This document shows positions 4,979-56,126 of a stretch of 64,000 bases of DNA, piece by piece. The notes below the pieces were generated by a model, which was given only the letters and a program-made list of their open reading frames with translations, did no database searches and was not told the DNA's origin. The stretch is taken from the sequence record MF360958.1. One strand, written 5' to 3'. The first letter of the stretch is position 1; every line of letters starts with the position of its first letter. The position numbers were made by a program, and so were the translations under genes.

Positions 4979-5680
4979 CTATTCAAAAAAATCTTTTAGA
5001 ATGTTTAACCAGCGGTTTTTCCAATAATTAAATTCGTCACCAGTAACAATTCGTTCCGATACTGTAAAATCTGTTGAGTTTCCAAAAAGAATTACGAATT
5101 GATCTATATCGGTATTATAAAGATAATTATGAGCTACCGCATAAGCGGCGCTTTGAAGAAAATAATTTTCCATATGTTCTTCTTTTTTATCTTTATAACT
5201 GTTTTTAAAATCAATTATAGAGGGTTTGCCATTATATACACCAATTAAATCAGCACGACCGGCATAGAGTTGAGGAATGAATAACGGGGTTTCACTACCC
5301 CAAAGTTCTGTTAATTTTTTTTCAAGATAATTGCTTTGAATATTATTTGCTAACTTGTTAGCAACTTCAAATAAAAAGTTTTTCTTAAATTTATTTTCAT
5401 AATTAGGTGTTTCAGTAAGTCGATAGTGAAGAATATCATGCATTCGATCACCAATATTTGTACTTTTAGAAATTATTTGATTTGCTTTATCATGTCCAAT
5501 AAGATTCTTCCATTCTTCAACGGCATCTTTTACATTAGACATTCGAGAAATGATAGTTGTTACAGAATAAAGAGGATCATATTCAAAGTTATTATGTCTT
5601 ATAAAATAAACCCTGCCGTTTTCAGTAGTAGATTCATCTTTAACAACAGGATAGGTAAAAGGAGATTTTATAGAAATCAT
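4979..5680 (-). CDS. PD-(D/E)XK family exonuclease
   Basis: SVTTII, GDRMH, YAGRADLIG and IIDFKNS motifs; QSAAYAVAH. Confidence 0.85.
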   Translation of the reverse strand: MISIKSPFTYPVVKDESTTENGRVYFIRHNNFEYDPLYSVTTIISRMSNVKDAVEEWKNLIGHDKANQIISKSTNIGDRMHDILHYRLTETPNYENKFKKNFLFEVANKLANNIQSNYLEKKLTELWGSETPLFIPQLYAGRADLIGVYNGKPSIIDFKNSYKDKKEEHMENYFLQSAAYAVAHNYLYNTDIDQFVILFGNSTDFTVSERIVTGDEFNYWKNRWLNILKDFFE

Positions 5681-6045
5681 TGTAGGTTATCATCCACAGC
5701 ATCTTTAGCAATATTTGCAACACGGTCATAACCACCTTCTTCAGTACCTTCAGAATCCATAGGTTCTCCAATGGTTTCTGTATCATTATTGATTTCATTT
5801 TCATCGATTACATTAACATATTCATTTTCATCTATTTCGAATCCATCCATATTTTCAATTTCATTTATAAGATCATCTTTAGATACTGAAAAACCCATAG
5901 TGGATAATTCATTAATTATATTATTAATATGTGTAGTTTCAATATTTTTAGTTTTAAACATAACAAGAACATCGGTTAAGCTTTTATGAAGATTATCATC
6001 AAATTTTTCTGATTGTGTTTTTTCAAAAAGATCATTTATTCTCAT
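5677..6045 (-). CDS. acidic hypothetical protein with LFE leader (putative head protein)
   Basis: starts MRINDLFEK; lies in the structural operon. Confidence 0.7.
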   Translation of the reverse strand: MRINDLFEKTQSEKFDDNLHKSLTDVLVMFKTKNIETTHINNIINELSTMGFSVSKDDLINEIENMDGFEIDENEYVNVIDENEINNDTETIGEPMDSEGTEEGGYDRVANIAKDAVDDNLQ

Positions 6046-6048
6046 AGT

Positions 6049-7032
6049 TTACTCTTGTCTGCGTTCAAAATCTTCTGAATCAAGATCTAAATCAAATTCA
6101 TCTTCATCATTGTCATTTTCTTTTTCATCATTGTCAATACTAGTATCATCATCTTCAGATTGATCTTCATCTTCAGATTGATCTTCATCTTCAGATTGAT
6201 CTTCATTTGCTTCGTCATCTTCAAGAGATCCAATATCAGGTTCATCAACCATATTTTCTTCAGAATTTTCATCACCACTTAACATATTAACAACATCATA
6301 AAAATCATCTTTGGATTGATCAATAGTTTCGAGAATATTATTTAATGCACTATTAAGTTTTTCACGAATTTGATTACCTGTTTCACTAGAATATTCAGAA
6401 TTAACCTTTTGAACAAAGCTATCTAATGTTTCATTAAGCATTTCACCAATTTTAGCTTGATAATTAAGAATATCATCAAGAAGACCCTGTGCTGCCATAA
6501 TTGTTTCAGCACGTTCAGTATCTTCATTCATTTTCATTCTTAGTTGCTGCCCTACATCATTTTTAAAAACTTCTTTTTTAAGACGACTCAACTTTTCATT
6601 AAGCTCTTTAGATTTTTCATCAAAGCCGTTAGTATGTACATAGTTTTCATATAAACTTTCAAGATGAGCAATTTTTTCTTTAGGGGATACTGTTTTTGAC
6701 ATTTTTGATTTACCTTTTTGTTCTTTATTCTCTTTTATAGATTGTCCTGACGATTTAATAATATCAATATCTGAATCATATTTTTCATTTTTCATAACAA
6801 TATCACATGCTTCAATAATTAGAAGTGCTTTATTATAGTTTTTATCTTTATGATAAGTATTATATGCACTATTTTCAACAACTTTATTTTTTAAGTTTTT
6901 AGCTTTTTCTTTAAGATTTTTAGCTCTTTCAAATGAAGAATCCATACTTAAAGTATTATTATAATTAAATGATTCTTTGAGCATTTTATTAATGCGATCC
7001 AAACGTTTTTGATTAATTCTTTTGTCAGCCAT
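6049..7032 (-). CDS. putative prohead core/scaffold-like protein
   Basis: helical composition, several (L/I/M)xE sites, very acidic C-terminal tail; function is inference. Confidence 0.55.
   Translation of the reverse strand: MADKRINQKRLDRINKMLKESFNYNNTLSMDSSFERAKNLKEKAKNLKNKVVENSAYNTYHKDKNYNKALLIIEACDIVMKNEKYDSDIDIIKSSGQSIKENKEQKGKSKMSKTVSPKEKIAHLESLYENYVHTNGFDEKSKELNEKLSRLKKEVFKNDVGQQLRMKMNEDTERAETIMAAQGLLDDILNYQAKIGEMLNETLDSFVQKVNSEYSSETGNQIREKLNSALNNILETIDQSKDDFYDVVNMLSGDENSEENMVDEPDIGSLEDDEANEDQSEDEDQSEDEDQSEDDDTSIDNDEKENDNDEDEFDLDLDSEDFERRQE
6151..6204. repeat. 3 x 18-bp perfect tandem repeat encoding (EDQSED)3
   Basis: ATCTTCAGATTGATCTTC at 6151, 6169 and 6187. Confidence 0.9.
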
Positions 7033-7091
7033 TTCAATAATCCTTAGTTGCTTTTTTTTAATTAATTAACTTTTTGTTTTGATTGTATTTA

Positions 7092-7936: not shown

Positions 7937-7954
7937 ATTAAACCCTCAGTTCAT

Positions 7955-8125: not shown

Positions 8126-8129
8126 AGTA

Positions 8130-8456: not shown

Positions 8457-8502
8457 AATATTTTAAACCCCTAGTTAATATTGAGATAATAATCAGCAGA
8501 AA

Positions 8503-18858: not shown

Positions 18859-20289
18859 ATGTTTGAAGCACTCAATCTTTCTCATTTATTAGGGCAAGAC
18901 CCAATAACTTTTATAAGAGATCAAATTCAAAATAATCAAATGTTAGTAGCGTTTGTTGCAACAATGGCTATTGGTTCGATCTTATTTTTCTTGAGAAAAA
19001 TACCTTCATTGTTGTCAAAACTGTTTTTATCTAATTTTACAGTTGTAATGACTGTATCAAATTCAGATTTAAATTATAATGATATTATGAATTATTTCAC
19101 AGCAAATGGTTTTATAAGTTCAAAAGTAAGACGTGTTGAAGCAATTGAATATTGTCAAAAGAATGAAGATAGTAATTCTTTCAAACAATCTATGACTAAT
19201 AATATAGATCTTGGTTTAGGACCGGGTTATCATATTATTTTTTATAAAAGAAAGCCTTTTCTTATTCATCATCATATTAGTCAAGAATCAAAAATGAAAG
19301 ATAAACCAAAGACATTAACAATTAGAACATTTGGGCGAAATAATACTGTATTAAAAAACTTTTTACATGATGTAACGAATTATGTTTTCAATAGAGATAG
19401 TGAATATATTCGTGCTGAAATTGTTGATAGTTTTCGGTCATTTGAAACACAATCTCCAAAACGATATCGGCATACTCTCATCCTTGATAAAGAAACTGAA
19501 GATGATATTTTTCATGATATTGGTTGGTTTACTACAAACCGCAATTGGTATATGAAGCGTGGTATTGCTTATAAGCGAGGTTATCTATTCTATGGTCCTC
19601 CGGGTACGGGTAAGACCTCATTGGTTAAAACTATTTCCACGTATCTAGAAACAAATATTAAAATTATCAATCTAAATTCTGTCATGGATGACAATCAGCT
19701 ATTAGCTATGTTTGCCTCTATTGATAGAGGCAGTATAGTACTGTTAGAAGACATTGATGCTATTAATCTTGATATCAATGAACGAAATAAATCCGTTTCT
19801 AATCAATCAAACATTAAGAAAGTCAAGAATGATTCTAAAACACCAAATGAAAGTGAAAATGAACAAAATGAACAAGAGGAACATAGAGGTGGTGGTGGTG
19901 TAACACTTTCTGGTGTGCTTAATGCTCTTGATGGTGTTACCAATTCCGATTCAGTGATAACCATCATGACAACTAATTATCCCGAGAAAATTGATACTGC
20001 TATGTTACGTCCGGGACGTGTTGATAAGAAAGTTTATATTGGTTATCCAAATTTTGACTCTTGTAAACGCTTTTTTGAAATGTTTTATGATGATATTCAA
20101 GATGAAGAAATTAAAGATAATTTTGCACAAGCTTGTGTGAACAATCAATTATCACCTGCTGATATTCAAGAAGTTTGTATTGAAAATATTGGAAATCCTG
20201 AAAAAGCAATTGATAATATCAAAAATAATTCACACCAAAAATCATTACATAGTGTTTATTATACTAAAAATAATAACACAATTTCATAA
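18859..20289 (+). CDS. BCS1-like membrane-anchored AAA+ ATPase
   Basis: N-terminal hydrophobic segment; WYMKRGIAYKRGYLFYGPPGTGKTS Walker A, LLEDID Walker B, VTLSGVLNALDGV, TTNYPEKID.AMLRPGRVD. Confidence 0.85.
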   Translation: MFEALNLSHLLGQDPITFIRDQIQNNQMLVAFVATMAIGSILFFLRKIPSLLSKLFLSNFTVVMTVSNSDLNYNDIMNYFTANGFISSKVRRVEAIEYCQKNEDSNSFKQSMTNNIDLGLGPGYHIIFYKRKPFLIHHHISQESKMKDKPKTLTIRTFGRNNTVLKNFLHDVTNYVFNRDSEYIRAEIVDSFRSFETQSPKRYRHTLILDKETEDDIFHDIGWFTTNRNWYMKRGIAYKRGYLFYGPPGTGKTSLVKTISTYLETNIKIINLNSVMDDNQLLAMFASIDRGSIVLLEDIDAINLDINERNKSVSNQSNIKKVKNDSKTPNESENEQNEQEEHRGGGGVTLSGVLNALDGVTNSDSVITIMTTNYPEKIDTAMLRPGRVDKKVYIGYPNFDSCKRFFEMFYDDIQDEEIKDNFAQACVNNQLSPADIQEVCIENIGNPEKAIDNIKNNSHQKSLHSVYYTKNNNTIS

Positions 20290-20674: not shown

Positions 20675-20877
20675 TTCAATCAACAAATAATAGCTCAAAA
20701 GGTGTTACACTTGAAGCTGAAATTGATGAAGCTTTTGCTTATCTTTCAGCTTCAGGCAAAAACGCAACCACAATTGTATTTAACAATATTACATTAATGG
20801 TTGAACGCCAGTCCAATATTGACAACATTATTGCAGATTACCATTCAAAACTAGAACAACGAAAAGCGAATCGTTAA
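20671..20877 (+). CDS. hypothetical protein (68 aa)
   Basis: GGAG RBS; ATGA overlap with the upstream ORF. Confidence 0.7.
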   Translation: MIQSTNNSSKGVTLEAEIDEAFAYLSASGKNATTIVFNNITLMVERQSNIDNIIADYHSKLEQRKANR

Positions 20878-22007
20878 TCTTTTAATTCTTCAACTATTTC
20901 ATCCCCTATGGTACTATAGGGGATCAATATATACTCTTTCGTATTAAACCATAATTCATTATCATCAATACCATCGTCAATACTATTTGTAATGAAGTTT
21001 TCTTCTACGTTTTCTTTAAAATTTTCTAATACATCTTTTATTCGATAATTATCTATAAATAATACTTCAAGTTCATTTTCTAATGATTGTAACTCATTAA
21101 TAATAACTTTAATTTTATTGCCGATAGTATCTATAACTTTAATATCCCCATCATAATCAGCAAATTTATTTTTAATGTTTTGATAACTTTCCATACAAGT
21201 ATTAATATATTTGGTAATAATAACTTTTACTTTTTTCATAATATCTTCTAATCCATTAGTTATAAGATATTCTAAATTAGTAGATTGAGATACTACTTTT
21301 TCAATATTTTCTATTATATAATCATAATTATCATTAATTTTTTTAAGTTCTTTATCCAATGTAGATTTATCAATAATGTTATGGTCATTATTTGCAATAA
21401 ATATTTGATCATTCAATTCACTTATAGGATTTTTCATGGATTTCAAATTAGAAAGATAACGGTTTATAAATTCACCATTAATGTTTGTAAAAAATTGATT
21501 TAGATCATTTAAGTTTTTTGTCATAATGTCTTGTGATATATTAATATCGCCTCTACCAGATGGCCCCTTTGAATAACTGTACTCATATCCACCTACTGGA
21601 AGGAAATAAAACCATTGATCCACCGCAACACCTTTAAAGTCTGTTGGTTGTTGTGTAGTTGTGAATACAACATGTTCATCACGTCGAGCAATACCTTGTT
21701 TCTCAAAATAATCGTTAAGCTGTTGTCGGAACGTATGATCACTGGTAATGTTTCCGTATGAAATTTTTCTTTTCTCGCGAGTCTTTCTTGTAAAGATAGC
21801 ATCTGTTGACAATCCATCTTCACCACGATAAACTATTATATTATTTGTATAAAATTCATTTATAAAATTTTGTGATTTTGATCTAATGAATTTTACAGCT
21901 TTTTCAACAAATGCTCTGCGGTATGTTGAATATTTATCAAGTTCTTCAATCTCGTCTGGTATTTCAATATAATTTGATTCATCGTTTTCCATCATATATA
22001 AACGCAT
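20874..22007 (-). CDS. hypothetical late protein with MRLYMMEN leader; possible ART-like fold
   Basis: AAGGAG RBS; late box at 22032-22039; IIVYRG and VVFTT segments. Confidence 0.7.
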   Translation of the reverse strand: MRLYMMENDESNYIEIPDEIEELDKYSTYRRAFVEKAVKFIRSKSQNFINEFYTNNIIVYRGEDGLSTDAIFTRKTREKRKISYGNITSDHTFRQQLNDYFEKQGIARRDEHVVFTTTQQPTDFKGVAVDQWFYFLPVGGYEYSYSKGPSGRGDINISQDIMTKNLNDLNQFFTNINGEFINRYLSNLKSMKNPISELNDQIFIANNDHNIIDKSTLDKELKKINDNYDYIIENIEKVVSQSTNLEYLITNGLEDIMKKVKVIITKYINTCMESYQNIKNKFADYDGDIKVIDTIGNKIKVIINELQSLENELEVLFIDNYRIKDVLENFKENVEENFITNSIDDGIDDNELWFNTKEYILIPYSTIGDEIVEELKD

Positions 22008-22087
22008 AAATAATATTCTCCTTTCTAATATTATTTATTGACTATAATACATATTGATGATAATATTTTAAAAAACGAGTTTATAAC

Positions 22088-26468: not shown

Positions 26469-26476
26469 GATAAATA
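26469..26476 (+). promoter_or_regulatory. late promoter box (GATAAATA)
   Basis: 27 bp upstream of ORF 26503. Confidence 0.5.
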
Positions 26477-32416: not shown

Positions 32417-32480
32417 GAGATACATTTCCTGTTTGAAGTATTTATTGAATTGTTCACCAATAAATAATATAAAAATGATA

Positions 32481-33648: not shown

Positions 33649-33676
33649 TAAAGCCAGCATTAATGCTGGCTTTATT
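33647..33676. terminator. bidirectional terminator between convergent genes
   Basis: 30-bp perfect palindrome AATAAAGCCAGCATTAATGCTGGCTTTATT. Confidence 0.85.
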
Positions 33677-34812
33677 TATACTAGATCTAGTATACTCGTG
33701 GCTTTTGTCTCTCTGCTTATACCGTATTTTTCCAATGTATTACCAACTTTAATATTTAAATCGTTTTGAAATTCATCACTTATTACACCTTTATGTTTAT
33801 TACTTTCAGACATTTGTTTTACAATTTCCAATGTCAACAATGATCTTAAATACTTATTATTTTTGGTAGTAAATGAAGTGGATGAATAGTATATTTCTTC
33901 ATCAATGCTTACCGAAATAAAATTAGCATCGTATTGAAAAGTTCCAGTATTAATTTGGCGTTTATCACCTTTAATGGTTATTTTTACAGGTAACGTATAA
34001 CGTTGAATCACTTTTCCATTATCCATATGATTGGTGTAGCCTTCTTCAATACCTAATGGTGTTATCTCATAAGTCGTATATTGTGTTGGAAAACTTATAC
34101 TAAGTTCTTGTTCCAGTTGTTCTATATCAACAGCGTCCGATTCAAGTTTGTTTCTAAATTCAATCAGTGTTTTTTCAGTAGGTTCTTTTAATTCATTATC
34201 ACGATATTGTACTTCAACGATTACTCTAGTTTTTCGATTTGCAATAATGGCATACTTATCATAGCGTGTATGAATAATGTATATATCGTGAACTTCATTA
34301 TACGTTTCAAAATGGTTATCACTTCCTCGGGATGAAATACACCATCTTGTTTCAGAACCTAAGTGACATGATGCTTCTTTGGTATGAGGCTTAACCACTT
34401 TCCAATCATCACCTTTAGTTACTAGTTTATATTCTGATTTAAGTTCTTTTTCATAACGTTTTTGTTCAATACGAGACTCCCAATTAATGAGAGTTTCGAT
34501 AATTAAACTATGAAATGCATCCAATCGTTGTAAAACCTCATCTTGTTCTACAGATTTGTTGAGATATTTTGTCCACATGCTGGCATCTTTTGCCTTATCC
34601 GGCGCTTTACTTCCACCACTTATTACTAATAGAATATTACTTTTAACTAATTTAGAAAAAATATCGACAGGATGTTGATCTTTTATACCCATATCGTTAG
34701 CATGACTTCGAATATCATTTAATGTATTGTCAAAATTGTACTCATTGGCAATATTATCATATGCGTTTTTAAGATCTTTGTAATTTTCAAATAAAATATG
34801 CTTTACTTTCAT
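33676..34812 (-). CDS. divergent WC-domain protein with MKVKHILFEN leader
   Basis: VVKPHTKEASCHLGSETRWCISS aligns with VIPLTKDASCYYGKNTKWCT; late box at 34839-34846. Confidence 0.75.
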   Translation of the reverse strand: MKVKHILFENYKDLKNAYDNIANEYNFDNTLNDIRSHANDMGIKDQHPVDIFSKLVKSNILLVISGGSKAPDKAKDASMWTKYLNKSVEQDEVLQRLDAFHSLIIETLINWESRIEQKRYEKELKSEYKLVTKGDDWKVVKPHTKEASCHLGSETRWCISSRGSDNHFETYNEVHDIYIIHTRYDKYAIIANRKTRVIVEVQYRDNELKEPTEKTLIEFRNKLESDAVDIEQLEQELSISFPTQYTTYEITPLGIEEGYTNHMDNGKVIQRYTLPVKITIKGDKRQINTGTFQYDANFISVSIDEEIYYSSTSFTTKNNKYLRSLLTLEIVKQMSESNKHKGVISDEFQNDLNIKVGNTLEKYGISRETKATSILDLV

Positions 34813-34856
34813 GAACTTATTCCAATGTGTATATGAATTATTTATCTAAAAAAAGT

Positions 34857-37421: not shown

Positions 37422-38756
37422 TTATTTTTTCAACGATTGAACAAAATCGTCTAAATCATTCATTTCATCTTTTTGTACATCATCAGGATTAGTGTATGAT
37501 TTTTGAGTTAATTTCTCGTATTGTTTTATAACTTTATCACTAGGGTTTTCAATGTTTGCTATAATTTTTGGATATTCTTTAACAGCTTCTAACTGTATCT
37601 TTTCCGAAGGATTATCTATATAATTTATAGACCATGGATTTTGTTTTACTGCTTCTAGTTGTATTCGTTCTGTAGGGTTATTTATAAATCTAATATTTGA
37701 GCTATCTCGTTTCACTGCTTCTAACTGTATTTTTTCAGAAGGATTATCTATAAATCTAATATTTGAGCTATCACGTTTTACTGCTTCTAATTGAACTTCT
37801 TCTGAAGGATTATCTATGAACTGAATATTTTCACCATTATATTTAACAGCTTTCATTTTCATTTCTTCTGTAGGATTATCTATAAATCGAATACTAGGTC
37901 CACTTTGTGTAACAGCTTTCATTTTCATTTCTTCTGTAGGATTATCTATAAAATCTATAGATGATGGTTTATTTTTTATAGCTTCTAATTTGACATCATC
38001 TGATGGATTTTTTATTTGTTTTATTATAAGACCGTCTTCTTTTACTGCTTCGAGTTGTAGTTTTTCAGAAGGATTCTTTATACTAGGAAATTTATTAATA
38101 TTTAGTTGTATAATATTTAATTGATCTTCTTCCGAAGCATTATTAATATCTCTCATACTTTCTATTTTTTCTTCATTTTCATTATACCATATATATAATT
38201 CATCAGTAGTTATATCTGTTTGTTTTTTAAATTGACTTTCATCTATACCTTCATCCATATTATTAAAGTATTCAAATTTATTCAACATTTTTGAGTATAC
38301 AGCAGCAAATTTTTCATTATTAGTTTTCATATATACATAAAACAATACAATGTTTTTAAGATAAAAGTATTCATTAAATTTGTTATTTTCATTACCGGAA
38401 GTACACCATTTAGTATTTTTTCCGTAATAACAACTAGCATCTTTAGTCAGAGGAATAACTACCATTTTCTCATTATCTTCGTGAGCAATGATAGAATCTT
38501 TTTTCTTAGATTTCTTTACTTCACTTTTACTTTTCTCTTGAGATTTACTATCCACGAATTCCTTAAATGAATTCCAGCCTTGTTTAATCCAATACCCTAT
38601 ATCTTTCTCTTGTCCTGATACTGTGCCTTTCTTAGCTAATTGCTTAAAGGTATCAAGGTATTGCTTCACTTCTTCCTCAGATGCTTCTTGAGCAAATTTT
38701 GATTGGGCATCTTTATAGGACTCGAATAAGTATTGTGTTATATGTTTAATTTTCAT
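37422..38756 (-). CDS. MKVKHITQYLFES-family protein (9 regular 22-aa repeats)
   Basis: shared N-module; repeats SIxFIDNPSExxQLEAVK; 37844-37886 = 37910-37952 exact 43 bp at a 66-nt period. Confidence 0.9.
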   Translation of the reverse strand: MKIKHITQYLFESYKDAQSKFAQEASEEEVKQYLDTFKQLAKKGTVSGQEKDIGYWIKQGWNSFKEFVDSKSQEKSKSEVKKSKKKDSIIAHEDNEKMVVIPLTKDASCYYGKNTKWCTSGNENNKFNEYFYLKNIVLFYVYMKTNNEKFAAVYSKMLNKFEYFNNMDEGIDESQFKKQTDITTDELYIWYNENEEKIESMRDINNASEEDQLNIIQLNINKFPSIKNPSEKLQLEAVKEDGLIIKQIKNPSDDVKLEAIKNKPSSIDFIDNPTEEMKMKAVTQSGPSIRFIDNPTEEMKMKAVKYNGENIQFIDNPSEEVQLEAVKRDSSNIRFIDNPSEKIQLEAVKRDSSNIRFINNPTERIQLEAVKQNPWSINYIDNPSEKIQLEAVKEYPKIIANIENPSDKVIKQYEKLTQKSYTNPDDVQKDEMNDLDDFVQSLKK

Positions 38757-38757
38757 T

Positions 38758-40401
38758 TTATGATTCGCCTGTTTTAATAAAATCTTTTACATCTTTTAAT
38801 AACTCATCGGATATTGGATATAATAAACCATCCAATACTTCTTTTTGTTTTTCTAAAACAGATTTTTTAAATATACTGAGTTGATCTTTATTATTCTCAC
38901 CAATAATGTGTTTAATAATATATTTAATCATTGATAGTTTTAAATCGTCTGTTATTTTATCCAATAATTTAATCAACGGTAGATAACTGTTTAGATTATC
39001 TTCAACATTACGGAGCATCTGATCATTAAATTCTATGTTAATACTATCCTTTTTCATAGATTTTATACTATCAACGACTTGTTTAATATATTTCTCCATA
39101 TCAACCGGAGTATTAGATTCTATTATAGACTTGGCAATATAATCTATATTGCTATTATTGATAATTTTATAATCAACAAGTTTTTCAAATGTAAGATATT
39201 TACTGTCTAAAATAAAAAATAATTTATCAATTTGCTTATTCCTTTTAGAATAATTTGAAAAATGTGATTCTAATATATTAATTAAATTGTTATCTATTAA
39301 ATCATTTTTTATTAAATATACTAGCAATCTTAACGTATCATTTTCCAATGATTCTTTTAATAATGATTCTTTATCTGAAACATACTCATAAGCGTTTCTC
39401 CAAATTAAATTTCTAAGGAAGTCATATTCACTATAAATCTTATGATTCTTAGAATGGTCAATGAAGCTTAATATATTGTTTTCATTAGAGTTTTCAAAAA
39501 ATAATTCTTTTATAGGTTCAAAATTAACATTTGCTGGACTCATATTTTCTATACTAAATAACAAATAATTATCAATCATGCCAAAAATGTATTCCGTAGA
39601 GGTATGTTTTATATTATTCCATAATGAATTGATTTTTTTACTTAAATAACTATTATAAATTAATCTAAAACTAGCTCGTTTATCTTTAGAAATATTATAA
39701 ATTAGATCATCATCAACATTATCCAACTCATAGAATAAACTACTATCTTCTTTAATTAGATCAACTTTATCACTAGTAGAAGCGGAACTAATATCCATTG
39801 ATTTCATAATTGTTTGTTTATATTCATTAAACAGTTTACGCAAATAATCATCATCAATAGATGTAAATTGTTTGAATTGTTTTTGAGAAATAGATTTATC
39901 CATCTCATTAAAGAATTCAAATTTATCAACTTCTTGAGAATATGCACCAGCATATTTTTTTCCTGATTTTTTTATAAACACATAAAACAATACAATATTC
40001 TTTAAATAAAAATAATTTGCAAACTCATTATCTTCATCACCTGCGGTACACCATTTAGTATTCTTTCCGTAATAACAACTCGAATCTTTACTTAAAGGAA
40101 TAACCACTATTTTTTTGTCATCATCATGAGCAATAATAGATTCGCTTTTTTTACTTTTCTTTACCTGTGATTTAGATTTTTCCTGCGACTTGCTATCCAC
40201 GAATTCCTTGAACAAATTCCATCCTTGCTTGATCCAATACCCTATATCTTTCTCTTGTCCTGATACTGTGCCTTTCTTAGCTAATTGCTTAAAGGTATCG
40301 AGGTATTGCTTCACTTCTTCCTCAGAAGCTTCTTGAGCAAACTTTGCTTGTGCATCCTTATAGGACTCAAATAAGTATTGTGTTATATGTGTAACTTTCA
40401 T
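38758..40401 (-). CDS. MKVKHITQYLFES-family protein with an unrelated helical C-terminal tail
   Basis: shared N-module with a 68-bp DNA stretch identical to 37422..38756; no NP repeats in the tail. Confidence 0.9.
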   Translation of the reverse strand: MKVTHITQYLFESYKDAQAKFAQEASEEEVKQYLDTFKQLAKKGTVSGQEKDIGYWIKQGWNLFKEFVDSKSQEKSKSQVKKSKKSESIIAHDDDKKIVVIPLSKDSSCYYGKNTKWCTAGDEDNEFANYFYLKNIVLFYVFIKKSGKKYAGAYSQEVDKFEFFNEMDKSISQKQFKQFTSIDDDYLRKLFNEYKQTIMKSMDISSASTSDKVDLIKEDSSLFYELDNVDDDLIYNISKDKRASFRLIYNSYLSKKINSLWNNIKHTSTEYIFGMIDNYLLFSIENMSPANVNFEPIKELFFENSNENNILSFIDHSKNHKIYSEYDFLRNLIWRNAYEYVSDKESLLKESLENDTLRLLVYLIKNDLIDNNLINILESHFSNYSKRNKQIDKLFFILDSKYLTFEKLVDYKIINNSNIDYIAKSIIESNTPVDMEKYIKQVVDSIKSMKKDSINIEFNDQMLRNVEDNLNSYLPLIKLLDKITDDLKLSMIKYIIKHIIGENNKDQLSIFKKSVLEKQKEVLDGLLYPISDELLKDVKDFIKTGES

Positions 40402-40413: not shown

Positions 40414-41715
40414 TTATGGTGTATATTCTTTTAGATTTCCTGATTCGTTCAATTCATATTCAGTAGCTTTTTCATTCCATGTTTCTTTACTTTGTGCATA
40501 TTGTTCTAGTTGTTTTAGAAATTCTTTTGCTGTATCCCACTTTTGCATACCTACGGCTCTTGCAGCATAAATAGCAAGCCAGTGAACTTCATTATAAGGT
40601 ACTAATCTGTCATATTGTCTGGCGTAAGTAAGCAAGCCTTTGTTTATTTCTTCTCTATATTCTTCAAAGTCTTTTTCAAACCATTCCGCGTTATTTTTTA
40701 ACTCTTGGTCTATTCTTTTTAAAAATTTATCTGTGTTTTCAATATATTCTAATACTTTATTCAATTTTTCTTTAACAGCTTCATAACCGTCTTTATCAGA
40801 ACCGTATTTCATTTGATGGGTCATACGATGAATAAGATCTCCTGTATGTTCAATAACAACATTCAAAACACCCCCACCTATAAGATGTTGTAGCCTAACC
40901 ATAACAGTTTCGGGCTTGCCTCTTTGTTCTTCGCCAATTATAGAAAATTCTTCTCGAACAAACTTTGGCATTTCATCATTGGAATCATTATCATCTTCGT
41001 TAATATTTTCTTTATCTCTAAGCAATTCATCGACATGATATAAGAAACGTTTCATAAATCGTTTCCAAACACGTTGATCTCTTACATCAGAACTTTTAAA
41101 GAATTGATCAAAATAATCAGTAAAGGTTGGACTCATTTTTGAATTACCTAATTTACGAATAAGTTCATCACTTTTAAGATATTTTTCCAACTTATCAGGA
41201 TCAACATTTTTATCTCGTAATTGTTGAGCCGCATTAATTGCATACGCTTCAATTTCTTTTTTCTGCGATAAGTATTCTTTCCAAGATTTTTCATGTTGGA
41301 AATCTTTTCTTCGAACTGTCGATACAGAGTCTTTATAATTAGCTCTTAATGTTTGAATAACATGAACCATCTCATGAACAATCATTTGTCGTAATTCGAA
41401 TAAAAAGTTATCTATATCATTATTCATTTTTTCTTTATTAAAAAGAAAATTAGCGGTCAATAATATAGCTTCTTCTTTTTTATTATCAACACTAACTGAA
41501 ATATCAGCATAGTTAGGTTTTGTATGAGAACGTACTGATACTTCAGTAGGAATTTCTATATCATAATCATTGAGTATATCTTTAAGAGCACGTTTCACAA
41601 CAGTGGTAAAATTTTTCACATCATCATTGGTTGCGAGATGTTTTTTAAGAACATCCTGAACATGATCTTCTATTTGTTTCGATGATATAGCTTCGGTGAT
41701 TTGTTTAACTTTCAT
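40414..41715 (-). CDS. two-domain protein with MKVKQITEA leader and zincin-like HExxH domain
   Basis: IVHEMVHVIQ...EIEAYA; internal INEDDNDS linker. Confidence 0.7.
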   Translation of the reverse strand: MKVKQITEAISSKQIEDHVQDVLKKHLATNDDVKNFTTVVKRALKDILNDYDIEIPTEVSVRSHTKPNYADISVSVDNKKEEAILLTANFLFNKEKMNNDIDNFLFELRQMIVHEMVHVIQTLRANYKDSVSTVRRKDFQHEKSWKEYLSQKKEIEAYAINAAQQLRDKNVDPDKLEKYLKSDELIRKLGNSKMSPTFTDYFDQFFKSSDVRDQRVWKRFMKRFLYHVDELLRDKENINEDDNDSNDEMPKFVREEFSIIGEEQRGKPETVMVRLQHLIGGGVLNVVIEHTGDLIHRMTHQMKYGSDKDGYEAVKEKLNKVLEYIENTDKFLKRIDQELKNNAEWFEKDFEEYREEINKGLLTYARQYDRLVPYNEVHWLAIYAARAVGMQKWDTAKEFLKQLEQYAQSKETWNEKATEYELNESGNLKEYTP

Positions 41716-41731: not shown

Positions 41732-42463
41732 TTATTTATATAATTCCTTTACTTTTTCAGTGGGATTATCAATAGAATCAATACGATCAGGTTCATCTTT
41801 TAAAATTTCTATTTGGATATCTTCAGGTGTATTATCCAAATCCATTGCATGGTATAAAAAATCTTCATATTTGAGATATAACCTATCTAACATATTTTCA
41901 TCGATATTAAATTTATCTTTAATTATTTCCAATTGTTCATCTTCTAATTCTTCATCATATTCATTAACATATTCAATTTCTTCTGTACTATCAAAAGTTG
42001 GATATTTTATAGCAATTTTTTCATCACTTATTTTAGATAATACATAAAATAAAACAGTTTGGAATTGATAAAAATATTGATTAAACTTATTATCTTCATA
42101 ACCAGAAGTACACCATTTAGTATTTTTTCCGTAGTAACAACTAGCATCTTTAGTCAGAGGAATAACTATCATTTTCTCATCATCTTCATGAGCAATAATG
42201 GAATCGCTTTTTTTACCTTTTTTTACTTGAGATTTACTTTTCTCTTGCGATTTACTATCCACAAATTCTTTAAATGAATTCCAGCCCTGCTTTATCCAAT
42301 ACCCTATATCTTTTTCCTGCCCTGATACAGTACCTTTTTTAGCTAGTTGCTTAAAGATATCAAGGTATTGCTTTACTTCTTCATCAGAAGCTTCCTGAGC
42401 AAATTTTGCTTGTGCATCTTTATAGGATTCAAATAAATATTGTGTGATGTGTTTAACTTTCAT
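41732..42463 (-). CDS. MKVKHITQYLFES-family protein (shortest; 1 repeat plus cap)
   Basis: shared N-module; ends IDNPTEKVKELYK. Confidence 0.9.
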   Translation of the reverse strand: MKVKHITQYLFESYKDAQAKFAQEASDEEVKQYLDIFKQLAKKGTVSGQEKDIGYWIKQGWNSFKEFVDSKSQEKSKSQVKKGKKSDSIIAHEDDEKMIVIPLTKDASCYYGKNTKWCTSGYEDNKFNQYFYQFQTVLFYVLSKISDEKIAIKYPTFDSTEEIEYVNEYDEELEDEQLEIIKDKFNIDENMLDRLYLKYEDFLYHAMDLDNTPEDIQIEILKDEPDRIDSIDNPTEKVKELYK

Positions 42464-42465: not shown

Positions 42466-42780
42466 TTATGACCTATCTTTCCAAATTAAATAGTGAAGTT
42501 CTTCATAAGGATCGTTTGATTTTTCAGAATCTATAACAACGTCACCATTTACTACTACAGCCCAATTTCCGTCTGTATGTAAAAATAATTTTGCATGTTG
42601 TTCTCGAACTGTTTGAAACATAAGTACTTCTACATCTTCATTACTTACATGATTGTAATTTTTAATAGCATTTTGATGCTCAAACTCTCGGAATATTTTT
42701 TCTAAAGTATTTTTTTGTACATCACCACTGTTAGCATTTTCTATAAGATCCATAAACTTTCTTATTGAATTCATTATCAT
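42466..42780 (-). CDS. small protein with IRKFMDLIENA leader
   Basis: GGAG RBS; leader similar to 55848..56126. Confidence 0.7.
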   Translation of the reverse strand: MIMNSIRKFMDLIENANSGDVQKNTLEKIFREFEHQNAIKNYNHVSNEDVEVLMFQTVREQHAKLFLHTDGNWAVVVNGDVVIDSEKSNDPYEELHYLIWKDRS

Positions 42781-45024: not shown

Positions 45025-46061
45025 TTATGTATAATGATCCAATAACAAATATTGGTTCTATTATGCTTACAATATACGATTTTTTTGAAAAATTCCGAAC
45101 CGACCAAATAAGATTGCTATCAGAGTGTCACGAATTTAATGTTATTCAACTTTACGCAATGTACGATAATCTTTTTAAAGTACTAAGTGATTTGACGGCA
45201 GTTGGCATTCCTAACAATGTTAGTACTGATGATCCAGAACTTTTTAGTGATGGGCCCATGTGTTCAAAAGAATTTGGTATATATTTACAGAACAAAATAG
45301 ATGAAATGGATGATGATTGTGTTATCTATTTTGTAAATAACCTGTTCAAGTTTGACTTAGATGGCGAACCGTATGCGGTCAATGACAGTAAACGTTCAAA
45401 TAATCTATCACACGTGGACTCATTGAAACCGTTAATCGATGATGAAAAAAGCTCTTTTTGGATGAAATCTTGGCTTCAAACAGAATTTATGAATACTAAA
45501 TATGTCCACGAACAATATATAGATTTTATAAAATGCGCCGATATCAGTGAAAGTTTAATCGATAGATTCACAAATGATTTTTCTGTCACAATGATTATCC
45601 CAATTGATCATTTACATGATAATCCCAAAGAGCTTTTCGAATTATTATCAAAAAAGAATACTGAATTAAGAATAACGTATTGCACATTAGATTATGAATT
45701 TAAAAATAGAACTAGTATCTTTAGAGATTTTTCATGTGAAAGATTTTATAATAATGATCATTATAAAACCTATAAAACATTAGAAAATATCAAATATTAC
45801 GAAATGATTGATAATATTGTAAGATGTTATAAATTCGCAAAAGGCTATTACATAGGAAAACATTATATTACTGTGGAGTGTGAATTTGAATCACTACTCG
45901 AAGGTTATTTAAGTAAATTTTGTAATTATTTAAAAGTATTTTCAGATCCTTATCAAGGATACATTTACATGTCAAACTTTCGAATTAATACCATGTATAA
46001 TGATGTTCAGACTCGAAAAAAAGTAATTCAAATGTATGACTGTATAGCGAAACTAAAGTGA
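45009..46061 (+). CDS. hypothetical protein, paralogue of 46068..47033
   Basis: MLTIYDFFEKFRTDQI vs MLTIHDFFSNLRNDQI; shared DD.KSS.W and L.K.CNYLK motifs. Confidence 0.75.
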   Translation: MSYELIMYNDPITNIGSIMLTIYDFFEKFRTDQIRLLSECHEFNVIQLYAMYDNLFKVLSDLTAVGIPNNVSTDDPELFSDGPMCSKEFGIYLQNKIDEMDDDCVIYFVNNLFKFDLDGEPYAVNDSKRSNNLSHVDSLKPLIDDEKSSFWMKSWLQTEFMNTKYVHEQYIDFIKCADISESLIDRFTNDFSVTMIIPIDHLHDNPKELFELLSKKNTELRITYCTLDYEFKNRTSIFRDFSCERFYNNDHYKTYKTLENIKYYEMIDNIVRCYKFAKGYYIGKHYITVECEFESLLEGYLSKFCNYLKVFSDPYQGYIYMSNFRINTMYNDVQTRKKVIQMYDCIAKLK

Positions 46062-46067: not shown

Positions 46068-47033
46068 ATGTTAACAATTCATGATTTTTTTAGTAATCTT
46101 AGAAACGATCAAATCATCCCAATAACACAATGTGAAAATAAAGATATTTTTGCATTGTATAGTTTTTTTGAAAATTTTATTGTAACTATATCAGGACATT
46201 CTATAATAGGAATCCCTGATAATATTGATTATGATTTTTTAGGTAACTATGATTATAACGATACCTTGTTGGATTTTTTAGGATATCTAACTGATAAAGT
46301 TAAAGAAATGGAACCTGATAATAAAATTTATTATATTGATTGTACTGACATTGATGTTAAAAAAGATGAATATGGTTTTGTTCAAGAATGGTACTTTATT
46401 TATTCGGGCAATGACCATAATACAAAAAATACATTATCATCATTATACACAATTATTAATTTACGCGATGATAAAAAAAGTTCTTATTGGTATAATCAAC
46501 CGCCTTATGTAAGGTATGTAGATTACACAAATAGTGTTAACAGTAAGACTCTTAATAGAGTAAAAGAACTATTAACAACAATTGTTATTCCGATTTATGA
46601 TCAATCACAATCATTAGAATTAGCTCAGTTTTTTACGAAACTCAAACCAGAATTAAAAGTTCGTGTATATTACGATGGCTCACATCATAATTATCCCGAA
46701 AATTTTTCAAGTAAGATAAACGATGTAGAAGTAAATATTACGATGTATGATTATCATATTTCTAACAATATATCCTGCGTTATGTCTGATGTTTTACAAA
46801 TTTATCCCTATATGGATAAAAATTCTTCATCGAAATATTATTTAATGGTCGAAGTTGAATACGATGATCTTATTAATAATTCATTAACAAAATTATGTAA
46901 TTATCTTAAAATGACTAATTATTGGGGATCAACATATTTATTGATGAACGATTTTAATATTTCAACATTAATATCGAATAAGACGCTCAAAGATAGTGTT
47001 GTTAATATGCATGATGTAATCGCAAACTTATAA
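46068..47033 (+). CDS. hypothetical protein, paralogue of 45009..46061
   Basis: shared motifs with 45009..46061. Confidence 0.75.
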   Translation: MLTIHDFFSNLRNDQIIPITQCENKDIFALYSFFENFIVTISGHSIIGIPDNIDYDFLGNYDYNDTLLDFLGYLTDKVKEMEPDNKIYYIDCTDIDVKKDEYGFVQEWYFIYSGNDHNTKNTLSSLYTIINLRDDKKSSYWYNQPPYVRYVDYTNSVNSKTLNRVKELLTTIVIPIYDQSQSLELAQFFTKLKPELKVRVYYDGSHHNYPENFSSKINDVEVNITMYDYHISNNISCVMSDVLQIYPYMDKNSSSKYYLMVEVEYDDLINNSLTKLCNYLKMTNYWGSTYLLMNDFNISTLISNKTLKDSVVNMHDVIANL

Positions 47034-47662: not shown

Positions 47663-47821
47663 ATGAAAGAATATCACCTGAGTATCTACTCAATCAATGA
47701 AAATAAACGTATTGAGAGTATTAATCTTATAAAAGTTCATAAAATTGATATTGTTGATTATAATAATCTTATTGCTAAAGCTAAATATCGATTTAATGAA
47801 TGGGTTGATGAGCAGAATTAA
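47663..47821 (+). CDS. 52-aa hypothetical protein (below the track threshold)
   Basis: AAGGGTG RBS; ATG 47663 to TAA 47821; extended -10 TGTGTATAAT at 47641-47650. Confidence 0.55.
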   Translation: MKEYHLSIYSINENKRIESINLIKVHKIDIVDYNNLIAKAKYRFNEWVDEQN

Positions 47822-48798
47822 ATCAATCCACGTTTATTAATTTCATTCCAAAAATACTTAACTGCTTTTTTCCATTTTTCATTATCAGAGTTTTTCAAAC
47901 TCATAAAAAAACTTCTAGGTAATTTAACAGTTCTAAAATTGGTTAATGTATTATCAATACCTTTTAAGTTTTCCCCGCTATATTCTGATAATGTTTGAAG
48001 GGTATTCGTTTGCCCTACAATATAATTGAATATATTTCGTTTGTATTGTTTATCAATATATTGTTGTGATTCATCACTCATACTATTAAAAAACTTTTCA
48101 AAATCTCTTACGGCACTTAAAATCTGTGGGCTGTATTCTACTTCACTTCCAAAATATTCATCATAGTTTTCTTTTGAACCATGTTCGTGTTTATAATCGG
48201 GTTTCTCAACTTGTTTTTCAGACTTTTGTTTTAGATAATTATGTTGAATATAATGGGCCAATTCGTGTTCAATTGTTGACTTTGAATCTTTGATGAAATC
48301 AGTGAGATGTTTCTTAACAGTTTTATCAAAATCAAAAAGGTCCAATTCTTCAAAAATTTCTTTTTTTGATAAATCATCAGTGGTATACATTTCTTTATAA
48401 GTATCACGAACCATACTTAACGCTTCAATTAATGAATGAAAATTCACAACGACCATATTGTTTTTCTCATCATAAGCACCAGATGCGGTGTTATCTATAT
48501 TCATCAGAGCTAATGTAAGCGTTTCAAAGCCCTCATCGGATTCACTATAGGGGTTCTCTACTTGTTCAACATAAAGATCATATATGAAAGCCTGACTGGG
48601 TTTAAGATCAAGGAATGACTGATCCCCATTAGGAGATATATCATAAGATATTTTATCTTGAAGAAACTCAAGAAACATGGGTGTATTTTTAAACACATCA
48701 TAAACAACTTCATGTGCTTTAAATACAACGATTTCGTATGCTTGATCTTGAGCAGATTGCGGAACAGTAATTACACCTTCGTTGAGAATAACTTTCAT
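47818..48798 (-). CDS. zincin-like (HExxH) protein with MKVILNEG leader
   Basis: TIEHELAHYIQH...YFGSEVEYSPQ; late box GATAAATA at 48824-48831. Confidence 0.7.
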   Translation of the reverse strand: MKVILNEGVITVPQSAQDQAYEIVVFKAHEVVYDVFKNTPMFLEFLQDKISYDISPNGDQSFLDLKPSQAFIYDLYVEQVENPYSESDEGFETLTLALMNIDNTASGAYDEKNNMVVVNFHSLIEALSMVRDTYKEMYTTDDLSKKEIFEELDLFDFDKTVKKHLTDFIKDSKSTIEHELAHYIQHNYLKQKSEKQVEKPDYKHEHGSKENYDEYFGSEVEYSPQILSAVRDFEKFFNSMSDESQQYIDKQYKRNIFNYIVGQTNTLQTLSEYSGENLKGIDNTLTNFRTVKLPRSFFMSLKNSDNEKWKKAVKYFWNEINKRGLI

Positions 48799-48852
48799 TT
48801 TTTATATCCTTATCTTTTAAGGATATTTATCAGAATTTACTTTCCTATATTA

Positions 48853-52991: not shown

Positions 52992-53002
52992 TGCAATCCT
53001 TA

Positions 53003-53404: not shown

Positions 53405-53458
53405 ATTCTAGTACCTCTATTAAATTAAATACAATTATACTAAGAGTTGAATAATAAG

Positions 53459-53938: not shown

Positions 53939-53975
53939 ATTATTTCTCCAACTACTATATTTATCAAATTCTTAT

Positions 53976-55523
53976 CTAGATCTTATTATTAGGAATACTA
54001 TTAATGATTTCGTCTGCTTTATCATTAGAAAACACAATAAATTGTCCCGACCAATTTTTATTAATTTTTATTCTTAATAGTTTCAAATAAGATAATTGTT
54101 TAGTCGATTTAAGAATCATTTCCACACCTGTATCATAAGCAATATTTTTTAAACCAGAACCATCTATTAAATAATAATGTATAATATTACCACTCTTTTG
54201 GTATTTTCTTACAATTTCATTTACTTTTTCCCGACAAACATTCATAAGTTCTTTTTTATTATTCATTTCACCCATATTGTTTTTAACTTCATTTTGCATG
54301 GATGTTGGTGTTATACGAATTTTAAACAATATATTATTATTAATTTCGACATTATCATCATTTGTGATCACTTGATGAAATTCATCAGAACTCAATAGTC
54401 TATTATTGTACAATACATGATCATGTCGCATATCATGATGAAGAATAAACTGATTGAAAGTATAAAGTTCTTTATAGTGACTTAGAAAGCTTTCTCTATT
54501 TATAAGGTTATTATATTCTAATCGACCACTATTATATAAATCAATACTTGTTAATAATCCGGGAGAAAATGTAAATCTACGAGTTGTATGCATAAAGTTA
54601 TAATCTTTACTCATCTTTCCAATTCTAGAATTAATTGTTGTTATTGTTCCCTGTAATTGTTTAATTTTATTTGAATTTATAGTAAAATACATTGCATTTA
54701 TTTTTTTCAATTCATGATTGACATCTGAAACAAAATTATAATTATCAGCTCTATTAAAGTTTGCTTGTAAATGATGCTTTTCAGCAATAAGAAGATTTTT
54801 AATAAATTCATTACTTTGTTCGATATAATATTGAACACCTTTCACATCAATATGATAATTATTATCATCATGTAATGTTGTTAAGAACGTTACTTGTTTT
54901 AAAAGATTTTCAAAATTATCACTGGTTAACAAGCGACAATTATTGATATTATTAATAACTGTTTCAATTTCTTGAAATTTTGTTTTAGTTGGTTGTTTAC
55001 CGGTTTTAATGGTGCTTCTATTTTTCTCAATATATTGCGCTGCTCGGTTATACGCAAGAAGTTCGATCTTAATAAGATCGTCCATATCAAGATTGGTATA
55101 AATAGTTGATAGCGATTCATCAAGAACTTGTTTACAAGGAAGTTTATTATCTGTAAGTACTCGAATGTTATTTACATAATAATTAACTAATGAACTATAG
55201 TTCATTTGATATGTACTAACATCCATGAATAACAAGTTCGTGTTTTCATTTTTGATTGTTTTAATATTAATGAAATTTTTATAGATTTCATTTCCATTGG
55301 TTGGAATAATCATTACTGATGACAATCTGTCATCAGACTTTTCCAATTTTTCAATTTCATGACATACTGGCTGCATACTTTTATTTTCAAAGATTGGATT
55401 AATAATGACCTTATTATTAACATTATCAATTGTTGTACCAAGAGCAGGAATCTTTGCTTCATTTACCATATTTTTAAACACCTTAATTAATATAAATTTT
55501 CGCTGAATAATGAGCCGTGACAA
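53976..55523 (-). CDS. hypothetical protein (true start probably MVNEAK at 55469)
   Basis: long ORF; AAGGTG RBS before the internal ATG. Confidence 0.7.
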   Translation of the reverse strand: MSRLIIQRKFILIKVFKNMVNEAKIPALGTTIDNVNNKVIINPIFENKSMQPVCHEIEKLEKSDDRLSSVMIIPTNGNEIYKNFINIKTIKNENTNLLFMDVSTYQMNYSSLVNYYVNNIRVLTDNKLPCKQVLDESLSTIYTNLDMDDLIKIELLAYNRAAQYIEKNRSTIKTGKQPTKTKFQEIETVINNINNCRLLTSDNFENLLKQVTFLTTLHDDNNYHIDVKGVQYYIEQSNEFIKNLLIAEKHHLQANFNRADNYNFVSDVNHELKKINAMYFTINSNKIKQLQGTITTINSRIGKMSKDYNFMHTTRRFTFSPGLLTSIDLYNSGRLEYNNLINRESFLSHYKELYTFNQFILHHDMRHDHVLYNNRLLSSDEFHQVITNDDNVEINNNILFKIRITPTSMQNEVKNNMGEMNNKKELMNVCREKVNEIVRKYQKSGNIIHYYLIDGSGLKNIAYDTGVEMILKSTKQLSYLKLLRIKINKNWSGQFIVFSNDKADEIINSIPNNKI

Positions 55524-55762
55524 ACATCTTCATCACGTACAATTTGATTATTACCATGAGCAACTTCATAGGCTTGCTCGCGATCATAGAATTCACCAAA
55601 TTGATCAACAAATCCTTGGACCGTATTCGAATGGGTTACATGCATATTCATTGCTTGAATTTGTTGAATCATAAAATGGTCGAAATGACGAACACCTACA
55701 ACGATAGTTCCGTCTTGAAGTTTCATAGCTGCACATACAATACGCGGATTCATAGTATTCAC
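55487..55762 (-). CDS. small phage protein of a recognisable conserved type
   Basis: IVCAA..GVRHFD..QGFVDQFG.F.DR..A..VA..LFSENLY pattern. Confidence 0.7.
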   Translation of the reverse strand: MNTMNPRIVCAAMKLQDGTIVVGVRHFDHFMIQQIQAMNMHVTHSNTVQGFVDQFGEFYDREQAYEVAHGNNQIVRDEDVCHGSLFSENLY

Positions 55763-55847
55763 CTATTGATTAATTGACATAGGATATCATAATAACATTT
55801 TGAACACAAGAGGCATAAATACATTTACAATTAAGGAGTTAAGAATT

Positions 55848-56126
55848 ATGGCTACAGAACGAAAAATGCGTAAATATATGGATCTAATAAAAGAATCATC
55901 CGAAGACTATCAGAAGATCATTGATAATAATGAAGGTCGTTTTGGAGAACCTGCTTTAAATATTGATGGAGAAGAAATCGAAAACTCTGTATATCTTGGC
56001 GATGGTATGATTGCTTATAAAGAACATAATGGTGTTGTTATATATCATTATGATCCCGCTAATAATGAAAAGAAACATATGTTCTTAACCCATAAATCAT
56101 TCGAAATTCTAAAACATAAACTTTAA
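55848..56126 (+). CDS. small protein with MRKYMDLIKES leader
   Basis: AAGGAG RBS; CATAAATA box at 55814-55821. Confidence 0.7.
   Translation: MATERKMRKYMDLIKESSEDYQKIIDNNEGRFGEPALNIDGEEIENSVYLGDGMIAYKEHNGVVIYHYDPANNEKKHMFLTHKSFEILKHKL

Follow-up and report, generated by a model that had tools for sequence, protein, structure and literature searches.

The internal proteins of bacteriophage T4 and their capsid targeting sequence (CTS) were reportedly treated by Mullaney and Black in 1996. Another packaged protein of T4 is Alt, an ADP-ribosyltransferase (ART) that is processed by the prohead protease gp21. The T4 proteins IPI, IPII, and IPIII, the polymorphic T-even proteins Ip4 and Ip5, and others with a CTS have been reviewed (PMC3012670, PMC9026906). 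For IPIII, the N-terminal 10 residues are enough to direct packaging; residues 4 and 7 are important for targeting and residues 8 and 10 for processing. Apart from the CTS, the internal proteins of T-even phages differ widely (PMC9026906, PMC3012670). It has been proposed in a review that T4-like phages can package a variety of proteins by means of the CTS (PMC9026906). Here we analyse bases 1-64000 (the window) of the 440,001 bp genome of Salicola phage SCTP-2 (MF360958.1) from a solar saltern, and a set of genes therein whose proteins begin with a leader of 7-17 residues ending in Leu/Ile-x-Glu, mostly before Ser or Asn. We consider it likely that this leader is the SCTP-2 version of the CTS and thus a T4-type targeting and cleavage leader. 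The mechanism is known from T4, and SCTP-2 is a new and unusually large instance of it. We found no paper describing CTS-type leaders for SCTP-2 or the RaK2-like group.

The leader is present in 15 genes of the window, which form 10 BLAST families, and in 31 genes of 21 families in the whole genome. The genome-wide set was collected with regular expressions built from the N-termini listed in the initial annotation and searched in 503 genes, which were predicted with a simple codon-usage caller and whose starts match the deposited annotation. Families were counted by all-against-all BLASTP after removal of the leaders. All N-termini of the initial annotation are present. Its about 16 late proteins are unrelated only in part, as six of the window genes are paralogues of a single family, the WC-domain family. 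For genes on the minus strand its coordinates give the low end of the open reading frame (ORF), and the leader is located at the high end (22007 instead of 20874 in the case of gene 22). At least one further leader protein, MKITDILHE↓N at genome position 282007, was missed by the expressions (the arrow denotes the putative cut site). Most leaders (24 of 31) belong to class A, MK(I/V)K..L(F/L)E↓S/N, and the remaining seven to class B, M..(I/M)(R/K)K(Y/F)..L(I/L)E↓N(A/T).

The 31 leaders have Leu (25) or Ile (four) at position P3 of the putative cut site and Glu at P1 throughout, and P1' is Ser in 13, Asn in 12, Gly in three, and Ala in two. This pattern fits the (L/I)-x-E rule of T4 and the role of CTS residues 8 and 10 in processing (PMC9026906). 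A short (L/I)-x-E leader on otherwise unrelated, hypervariable late proteins and a protease of the gp21 family are thus common to both phages. However, T-even phages have three to five such proteins each compared to about 31 proteins of 21 families in SCTP-2, and SCTP-2 has two leader classes and mostly Ser or Asn, not Ala, at P1'. In addition, the SCTP-2 proteins are acidic, some of them are large and multi-domain (up to 735 residues), and the host is an extreme halophile.

The motif is concentrated at the N-termini. For L-[FYLIM]-E-[SN], 21 proteins have a match that begins at residues 3-14 compared to 2.3 expected from interior positions (P=6e-14), which is about ten times the interior rate. 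For the more relaxed L-x-E-[SNGA], the number of proteins with a match beginning at residues 4-14 is 35 compared to 8.6 expected. Such numbers could in principle result from chance and paralogy, if a few duplicated families inflated a common short motif in a proteome rich in Glu, Leu, and Asn. The bare [LIM]-x-E indeed occurs at 1.5% of the positions, six of the 15 window genes are paralogous, and two other families have two to four members. However, after collapsing the paralogues there are still 27 proteins compared to 8.6 expected (P=4e-7), the 21 families persist after the leaders have been removed, and the motif is associated with late promoters and conserved in independent metagenomic phages, as described below. 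Therefore, we regard chance and paralogy as an extremely improbable explanation.

The window was assigned to the SCTP-2 record by a 6-kb probe with 100% identity. SCTP-2 is a jumbo phage of the RaK2-like branch of the T4 superfamily, and its capsid protein shares about 61% identity with the capsid proteins of GAP32, CBB, Munch, and related RaK2-like jumbo phages. The deposited annotation lists homologues of the T4 portal gp20, the prohead protease gp21 (genome 81165-81803), the major capsid protein gp23 (83184-84368), the sheath, the DNA polymerase, and others. The protease belongs to Pfam Peptidase_S77 (gp21 family; PF03420; E=4.9e-24) and the capsid protein to Gp23 (PF07068; E=6e-94), and a scaffold-like coiled-coil protein (81822-83168) is encoded between them. 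If the leader motif is a protease site it is expected in the classical gp21 substrates, and it is found in the capsid protein, the scaffold, and the protease, a comparison that concerns the occurrence of the motif at predicted sites and not cleavage. The capsid protein starts with MANLFE↓N and has a second site, VVLE↓N, at residue 34, and both positions are kept in CBB as LLTE↓S and VME↓S. The scaffold-like protein contains 17 [LIMVF]-x-E-[SNAG] sites compared to 3.5 in composition-preserving shuffles (P<0.0005). The protease has five of these sites compared to 1.1 in shuffles (P=0.001) including LNE↓S at residues 19-21, which recalls the LIE-9 site near the N-terminus of T4 gp21 (PMC9026906).

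Processing after Glu by a gp21 relative, which is predicted for SCTP-2, is also a feature of the inner-body and ejection proteins of the phiKZ-like giant phages (proteases gp175 of phiKZ and gp245 of SPN3US), in which many head-internal proteins are cut and the propeptides hold several redundant sites (PMC10052503). However, these proteins are cut after A/S/G-x-E and mostly have long propeptides of 111-254 residues (PMC10052503), whereas SCTP-2 has the T4-like Leu/Ile at P3 and short leaders, and belongs to the RaK2-like T4 branch and not to the phiKZ group.

A connection to the T4 internal proteins is provided by gene 68. It matches Pfam IPI_T4 (PF11634) with E=1.7e-8 and 34.8 bits, above the curated cut-off of 25, and the solved chain of mature T4 IPI* (PDB 2JUB) with E=3.2e-7, mature residue 6 being paired with query residue 23. 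By tblastn, gene 68 has matches in 293 T-even records annotated as ipI or internal head protein, and in some of these the alignment begins at residue 4 and thus spans the leader. In an alignment with RB14 IpI (MKTFKEF...ITE↓A), a Dhakavirus protein, and a Providencia phage protein the P1 residue Glu16 is invariant and the mature domains are in register. The RB14 record also contains Ip4 and Ip5, whose leaders are MKTYQEFITE↓A and MKTFKEF..ITE↓S. By its sequence, gene 68 is a genuine homologue of T4 IPI and the positive control of the set. The order of a helix, four strands, and a helix in its single-sequence AlphaFold2 (AF2) model fits the published description of IPI*, in which beta sheets are flanked by N- and C-terminal helices, but the model is poor (pLDDT 63) and 2JUB was not retrieved with it by Foldseek. 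Therefore, at least one leader protein belongs to the family on which the CTS concept is built. IPI* of T4 enters the head, is ejected, and inhibits the GmrSD nuclease (PMC3012670, PMC13326640), and the predicted role of gene 68 is that of an IPI-like restriction inhibitor.

The leader genes can be connected to late transcription. Genome-wide, ATAAATA shows a sharp sense-strand peak 20-30 nucleotides (nt) upstream of start codons, with 16 and 24 copies in two 5-nt bins compared to about one expected per bin and a flat distribution on the antisense strand. The 7-mer ATAAATA is the real promoter signal and not the strict T4 octamer TATAAATA, which was rejected because its 156 copies in the genome, about 32 of them within 80 nt upstream of starts, do not form a sharp peak. 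ATAAATA boxes precede the genes of the portal, the terminase, the giant virion proteins, and other structural proteins, and the same sequence has independently been proposed as late promoter of CBB and GAP32 (PMC5259590). A homologue of gp55, the late sigma factor of T4, is encoded at genome 185992-187020 (E=1.9e-7 against RB14 gp55). Of the leader genes, 23 of 31 belong to ATAAATA-headed units compared to 117 of the 472 other genes (odds ratio 8.7, P=4e-8). Thus, the motif is commoner in the late genes, as proposed in the initial annotation, and not equally frequent outside of them. The six NATAAATA boxes that had been named in the window are all present and were measured to be 22-26 nt before the ATG. 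These data support that the leader genes are expressed late from promoters predicted to be of the gp55 type.

The gp55 homologue has 342 residues, nearly twice the length of T4 gp55 (185 residues), and is not labelled as such in the deposited record. Furthermore, CTAAATA instead of ATAAATA precedes the leader genes in a metagenomic contig, L014, and two leader genes of SCTP-2 (upstream of 42774 and 102214), and may be a second late-promoter form. A gene annotated as RpoH-like sigma factor is located on the opposite strand between two leader-gene units of the window (32800-33648).

If these data are read in the light of T4, the proteins would be synthesised late from the ATAAATA promoters and would be attached by their N-terminal 7-17 residues to the scaffolding core while the prohead is being assembled. 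The gp21-family protease would then cut after the Glu of Leu/Ile-x-Glu, before Ser, Asn, Gly, or Ala, and would free the mature proteins inside the head while the scaffold is chopped at the same motif. The mature proteins would remain among the packed DNA and exit with it at infection. By analogy, it is probable that about 30 late proteins enter the head and lose their leaders there, and that at least some of them reach the host together with the DNA. We infer the attachment to the core, the cut, the presence in virions, the ejection, an action before transcription, and the functions of the cargo by homology in the case of gene 68 and by analogy for all other proteins. The central idea of the initial annotation, a T4-type CTS on late proteins that is cut by a gp21-like protease after (L/I)-x-E, is therefore supported by the protease, the motif in the head proteins, the ATAAATA units, gene 68, and the relatives described below.

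It could be argued that the N-terminal motif is unrelated to the head and might be a tag for the Clp machinery of the phage or a translation-start feature of an AT-rich genome, in which Met-Lys-Ile/Val codons would be favoured. SCTP-2 encodes ClpA (window 57159-59375), ClpP, ClpX, and ClpS, and many leaders begin with Met-basic-hydrophobic, a start that presumably resembles a described class of ClpX N-terminal degrons. However, the invariant part of the leader is not the Met-Lys start but Leu-x-Glu followed by Ser or Asn. Leu-x-Glu recurs within the scaffold, the protease, and the N-terminus of the capsid protein, and coincides in alignments with the cut site that has been determined experimentally for T4 IPI. 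In addition, the P3 Leu is encoded by TTA, CTT, CTA, CTC, and TTG, and the P1' Ser by both TCN and AGY, in roughly genome-wide proportions. The selection is therefore on the peptide and not on a DNA cassette, and a codon-level effect at the start would not keep Leu across both codon families. Thus, a Clp tag or a translation-start effect is very unlikely. The other homologues of the Clp set are encoded outside the window (genome 112828-113424, 192057-192359, and 192731-193945), and the ClpP homologue of CBB was detected in virions by a single peptide.

Further evidence for a T4-type leader comes from uncultured relatives of the WC family. In the window this family comprises five proteins starting with MKVKHITQYLFES and, by BLASTP, gene 40. 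The invariant residues of the WC domain are P102, G112, T115, W117, and C118 (gene 48 numbering). For gene 48 a confident AF2 model was obtained (pLDDT 85), but a Foldseek search of the PDB did not find a matching fold (best E=3.5), and a comparison with the AFDB clusters retrieved only uncharacterised or DUF4116 proteins with TM values of at most 0.43. Among phage isolates the family was found in SCTP-2 only. A profile search of 1.84 billion representatives resulted in 15,179 matches, many of them to DUF4116 repeats alone, and the best 150 of these matches yielded 83 distinct proteins not from SCTP-2 with an N-terminal WC domain. Hydrophobic-x-E is present at residues 4-24 in 78 of these 83 representatives, and in 54 it directly adjoins the start of the conserved body, [GSDN][YF][KPSRN], although the length of the leader varies from 9 to 24 residues. 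Typical leaders are MRAYEFIAE↓GYKE and MRLFELLIE↓GYKE, which are near to the T-even MKTYQEFI(A/T)E↓A.

The close metagenomic relatives are encoded on the contigs L013 and L014, which have a similar G+C content and both contain arrays of leader genes. Such arrays are also found in L034 and L035, all four contigs being from T4-like phages. L013 encodes eight WC paralogues starting with MKI.DISYYLFE↓S and has other bodies behind MKIKDLFE↓N, MKIRDLFE↓N, MKIKHLLE↓T, and the class-B leader MRSINDYMSMIE↓A. In L014, the WC bodies follow a class-B leader (MTNDIRKNIMLIE↓S..ILDE↓SFKDA), and a GNAT acetyltransferase (L014:8290-8724; Pfam E=5e-6), a candidate for a packaged acetyltransferase, is encoded behind the class-B leader MLNEIRNDIKLIE↓S. 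Two WC-bearing contigs encode T4 baseplate, gp32, UvsX-like, UvsW-like, and terminase genes, and have the further leaders MKINEILE↓T, MKINEIITE↓I, and MRLNEVINE↓E beside the WC gene. In these relatives, class-B leaders thus stand in for class-A leaders on the same body. A variable and exchangeable leader before a fixed junction fits the prediction of a removable address tag. The two interchangeable classes might sort cargo to different places in the prohead or to different copy numbers. Tentatively, and with more doubt than conviction, the Leu-x-Glu leader could be taken as an address label that is readable across the whole T4 superfamily including uncultured phages, in which case injected proteins could be listed from sequence alone. 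The WC/DUF4116 proteins would then be a major class, so far undescribed, of proteins that are packaged into the head and injected and whose repeat tails are polymorphic.

Several observations weigh against a T4-type leader on the whole set. Some leaders are weak, for example MKVILNE↓G, MRLYMME↓N, and MKFNQIKTNQINE↓G, and a few clearly non-internal proteins match by chance, such as the terminase (MNQFFIE↓N) and the sheath. Eight leader genes do not have a canonical ATAAATA box within 12-45 nt, of which several have the variant CTAAATA box, a more distant box, or a place inside a long structural operon. The leader proteins are acidic (14-29% Asp and Glu), unlike the basic DNA-binding IPII and IPIII of T4, and homology to a known internal protein is limited to gene 68. 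The leader of the WC family is very constant and could belong to the fold, the helix in the AF2 model running unbroken through residues 4-21. Finally, none of the SCTP-2 leader proteins has a homologue in CBB, a RaK2-like phage with a published virion proteome, which has 82 proteins in common with SCTP-2.

The virion proteomics of CBB therefore says nothing direct about the leader proteins of SCTP-2. An IPI homologue was not found in CBB, and CBB shows neither a large leader expansion nor a strong N-terminal enrichment of the motif, its leader-like proteins being those of the head module and about ten others. The proteins encoded in the first 100 kb of CBB that were detected in virions by mass spectrometry (MS) do not have a leader. 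Nevertheless, at least eight of the approximately 32 leader-like proteins of CBB were detected in virions by MS compared to 47 of 479 other genes (P=0.014). These are CBB_213, CBB_214 (MSNLRKLME↓S), CBB_236, CBB_254, CBB_256, CBB_257, CBB_298 (MSKQFSKMME↓S), and CBB_320, and they lend weak and indirect support to the leader model.

The leader could also be a propeptide for the prohead protease on proteins that are structural or assembly parts of the head interior, such as an inner body or scaffold accessories as in the phiKZ-like phages, and not effectors for the next host. This would agree with the motif in the scaffold and the capsid protein, with the internal, radiation-sensitive protein mass in the heads of the RaK2-like phages 121Q and phAPEC6 (PMC7247149), and with most of the cargo having no recognisable enzymatic domain. 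However, the set is hypervariable and lineage-specific, with almost no homologues in isolates besides their absence from CBB, and contains paralogue arrays with variable repeat tails, which is typical of genes in an arms race and not of core structure. Furthermore, one member is a homologue of IPI, a known injected inhibitor, others have HExxH motifs, and one protein of a relative has a GNAT domain. Thus, purely structural proteins are an unlikely explanation for the set, and we favour a CTS on proteins that would be delivered with the DNA.

Concerning the cargo, most leader proteins could not be assigned a function with Pfam or PHROG. HExxH is present in genes 47 and 56 and in two leader proteins outside the window, while by our own estimate about 0.2 occurrences are expected by chance in about 9,500 residues. 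Genes 47 and 56 do not match any Pfam family including LPD23, and the third HExxH leader protein (genome 102214-103311) has sub-threshold matches to DUF6782 and DUF6055. Structural neighbours in the Atlas, all with TM values below 0.5 and to be taken as leads only, are viral clusters of about 230 residues and metallopeptidase families for gene 47, and LPD23, M76, and DUF6782 metallopeptidases for gene 56. Residues 290-491 of gene 31 have PcfJ-like neighbours, which are again a lead only. Among isolates, gene 56 has just two weak partial matches in Stenotrophomonas phages. A second array of leader-bearing paralogues (genome 209669-214398; MKIKQLFE↓S, MKINDILIE↓N, MKINNLLNE↓N) does not have relatives outside SCTP-2, even in a set of 5.8 billion proteins. 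The WC domains and zincins of the initial annotation are thus present at the motif level, but its ART-like folds were not found: no ART family was obtained by Pfam at E<=0.05 in the 30 leader proteins scanned, and the sole link is an Atlas neighbour cluster that is aligned through its LPD23 domain and not through its ART domain. T4 Alt, a large enzyme in the head behind a short cleaved leader, is the model for injected enzymes, but differs from the scanned SCTP-2 proteins in its ART domain. The leader protein encoded at genome 291482-292012 (MRIKQITE↓N) has a sub-threshold NUDIX match (E=0.0014) and may be a packaged nucleotide hydrolase.

A varied anti-defence cargo that is delivered with the DNA has also been described for the polyvalent proteins of phages and conjugative elements (Iyer et al. 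2017, as cited in PMC7824862). The LPD23-type zincin-like leads for genes 47 and 56 point in the same direction, but the SCTP-2 cargo would be distributed over many individually tagged proteins and not contained in one giant polyprotein.

Head-carried proteins are the first phage products to meet the defences of the host, such as the restriction-blocking IPI* of T4, and for most phages the sequence does not show which proteins these are. If the leader is a true packaging tag, about 30 proteins of SCTP-2 become candidates for injection that could be examined for a counter-defence function, among them the IPI homologue, the HExxH proteins, and an unexplored family of very large size. The same rule could then be applied to uncultured T4-like phages, and the leader could be used to load foreign proteins into the heads of jumbo phages, as the CTS does for T4. 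The leader genes of the window and the boxes are listed in Table 1.

Table 1. Leader genes and late-promoter-like boxes in the window (arrow, putative cut site)
Feature	Coordinates	Strand	Length (aa)	Leader	Remarks
Gene 7	5677-6045	-	122	MRINDLFE↓K	very acidic; inside long minus-strand operon, 3 nt after gene 8; nearest minus-strand ATAAATA at 7086-7092
Gene 22	20874-22007	-	377	MRLYMME↓N	weaker leader; paralogue of 251808-252680 (MKIKQLLE↓S)
Box AATAAATA	22032-22039	-			24 nt before ATG of gene 22
Box GATAAATA	26469-26476	+			26 nt before ATG of gene 31
Gene 31	26503-28710	+	735	MRLNNLFE↓S	second site LYE↓S at residue 17
Gene 33	28933-29514	-	193	MKIRHLYE↓N	orphan, no family match
Gene 34	29525-30931	-	468	MKVKHITQYLFE↓SF	WC-family paralogue with DUF4116 repeats (Pfam)
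Gene 36	31138-31617	-	159	MKITELFE↓S	GTG start; orphan, no family match
Gene 37	31619-32416	-		MKVKHITQYLFE↓S	WC-family paralogue; ATG at 32416 follows ribosome-binding site and promoter box
Box AATAAATA	32439-32446	-			22 nt before ATG of gene 37 at 32416
Gene 40	33676-34812	-	378	MKVKHILFE↓N	distant WC-family member (GSETRWCIS); E=1e-8 to gene 34
Box GATAAATA	34839-34846	-			26 nt before ATG of gene 40
Gene 45	37422-38756	-	444	MKIKHITQYLFE↓S	WC-family paralogue with five DUF4116 repeats (Pfam E=3e-17)
Gene 46	38758-40401	-	547	MKVTHITQYLFE↓S	WC-family paralogue
Gene 47	40414-41715	-	433	MKVKQITE↓A	HEMVH at residue 114
Gene 48	41732-42463	-	243	MKVKHITQYLFE↓SYKDA	minimal WC-domain family member
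Gene 49	42466-42774	-	102	MNSIRKFMDLIE↓NA	class B; heads the unit 42774-37422; upstream box only variant CTAAATA
Gene 56	47818-48798	-	326	MKVILNE↓G	weak leader; HELAH at residue 178; paralogue of 243350-244204 (MRLAKLYE↓S, HELQH)
Box GATAAATA	48824-48831	-			25 nt before ATG of gene 56
Box CATAAATA	55814-55821	+			late-promoter-like; 26 nt before ATG of gene 68
Gene 68	55848-56126	+	92	MATERKMRKYMDLIKE↓SS	class B; T4 IPI homologue

The deposited GTG start of gene 37 (32524) is probably wrong, because the ATG at 32416 yields the standard start of the family and the box and the ribosome-binding site would otherwise be located within the ORF. Elsewhere in the window, the adjacent paralogues at 45027-46061 and 46068-47033 have similar N-termini, MLTIYDFFEKFRTDQI and MLTIHDFFSNLRNDQI, and do not carry the leader. 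Sub-threshold Pfam matches to intein splicing domains were obtained for a tail-fibre-like protein of 937 residues (1195-4008) and a PhoH homologue (61563-63170). In addition, the window encodes a BCS1-like AAA ATPase with BCS1_N, AAA, and BCS1 lid domains (18859-20289), which is unusual for a phage.

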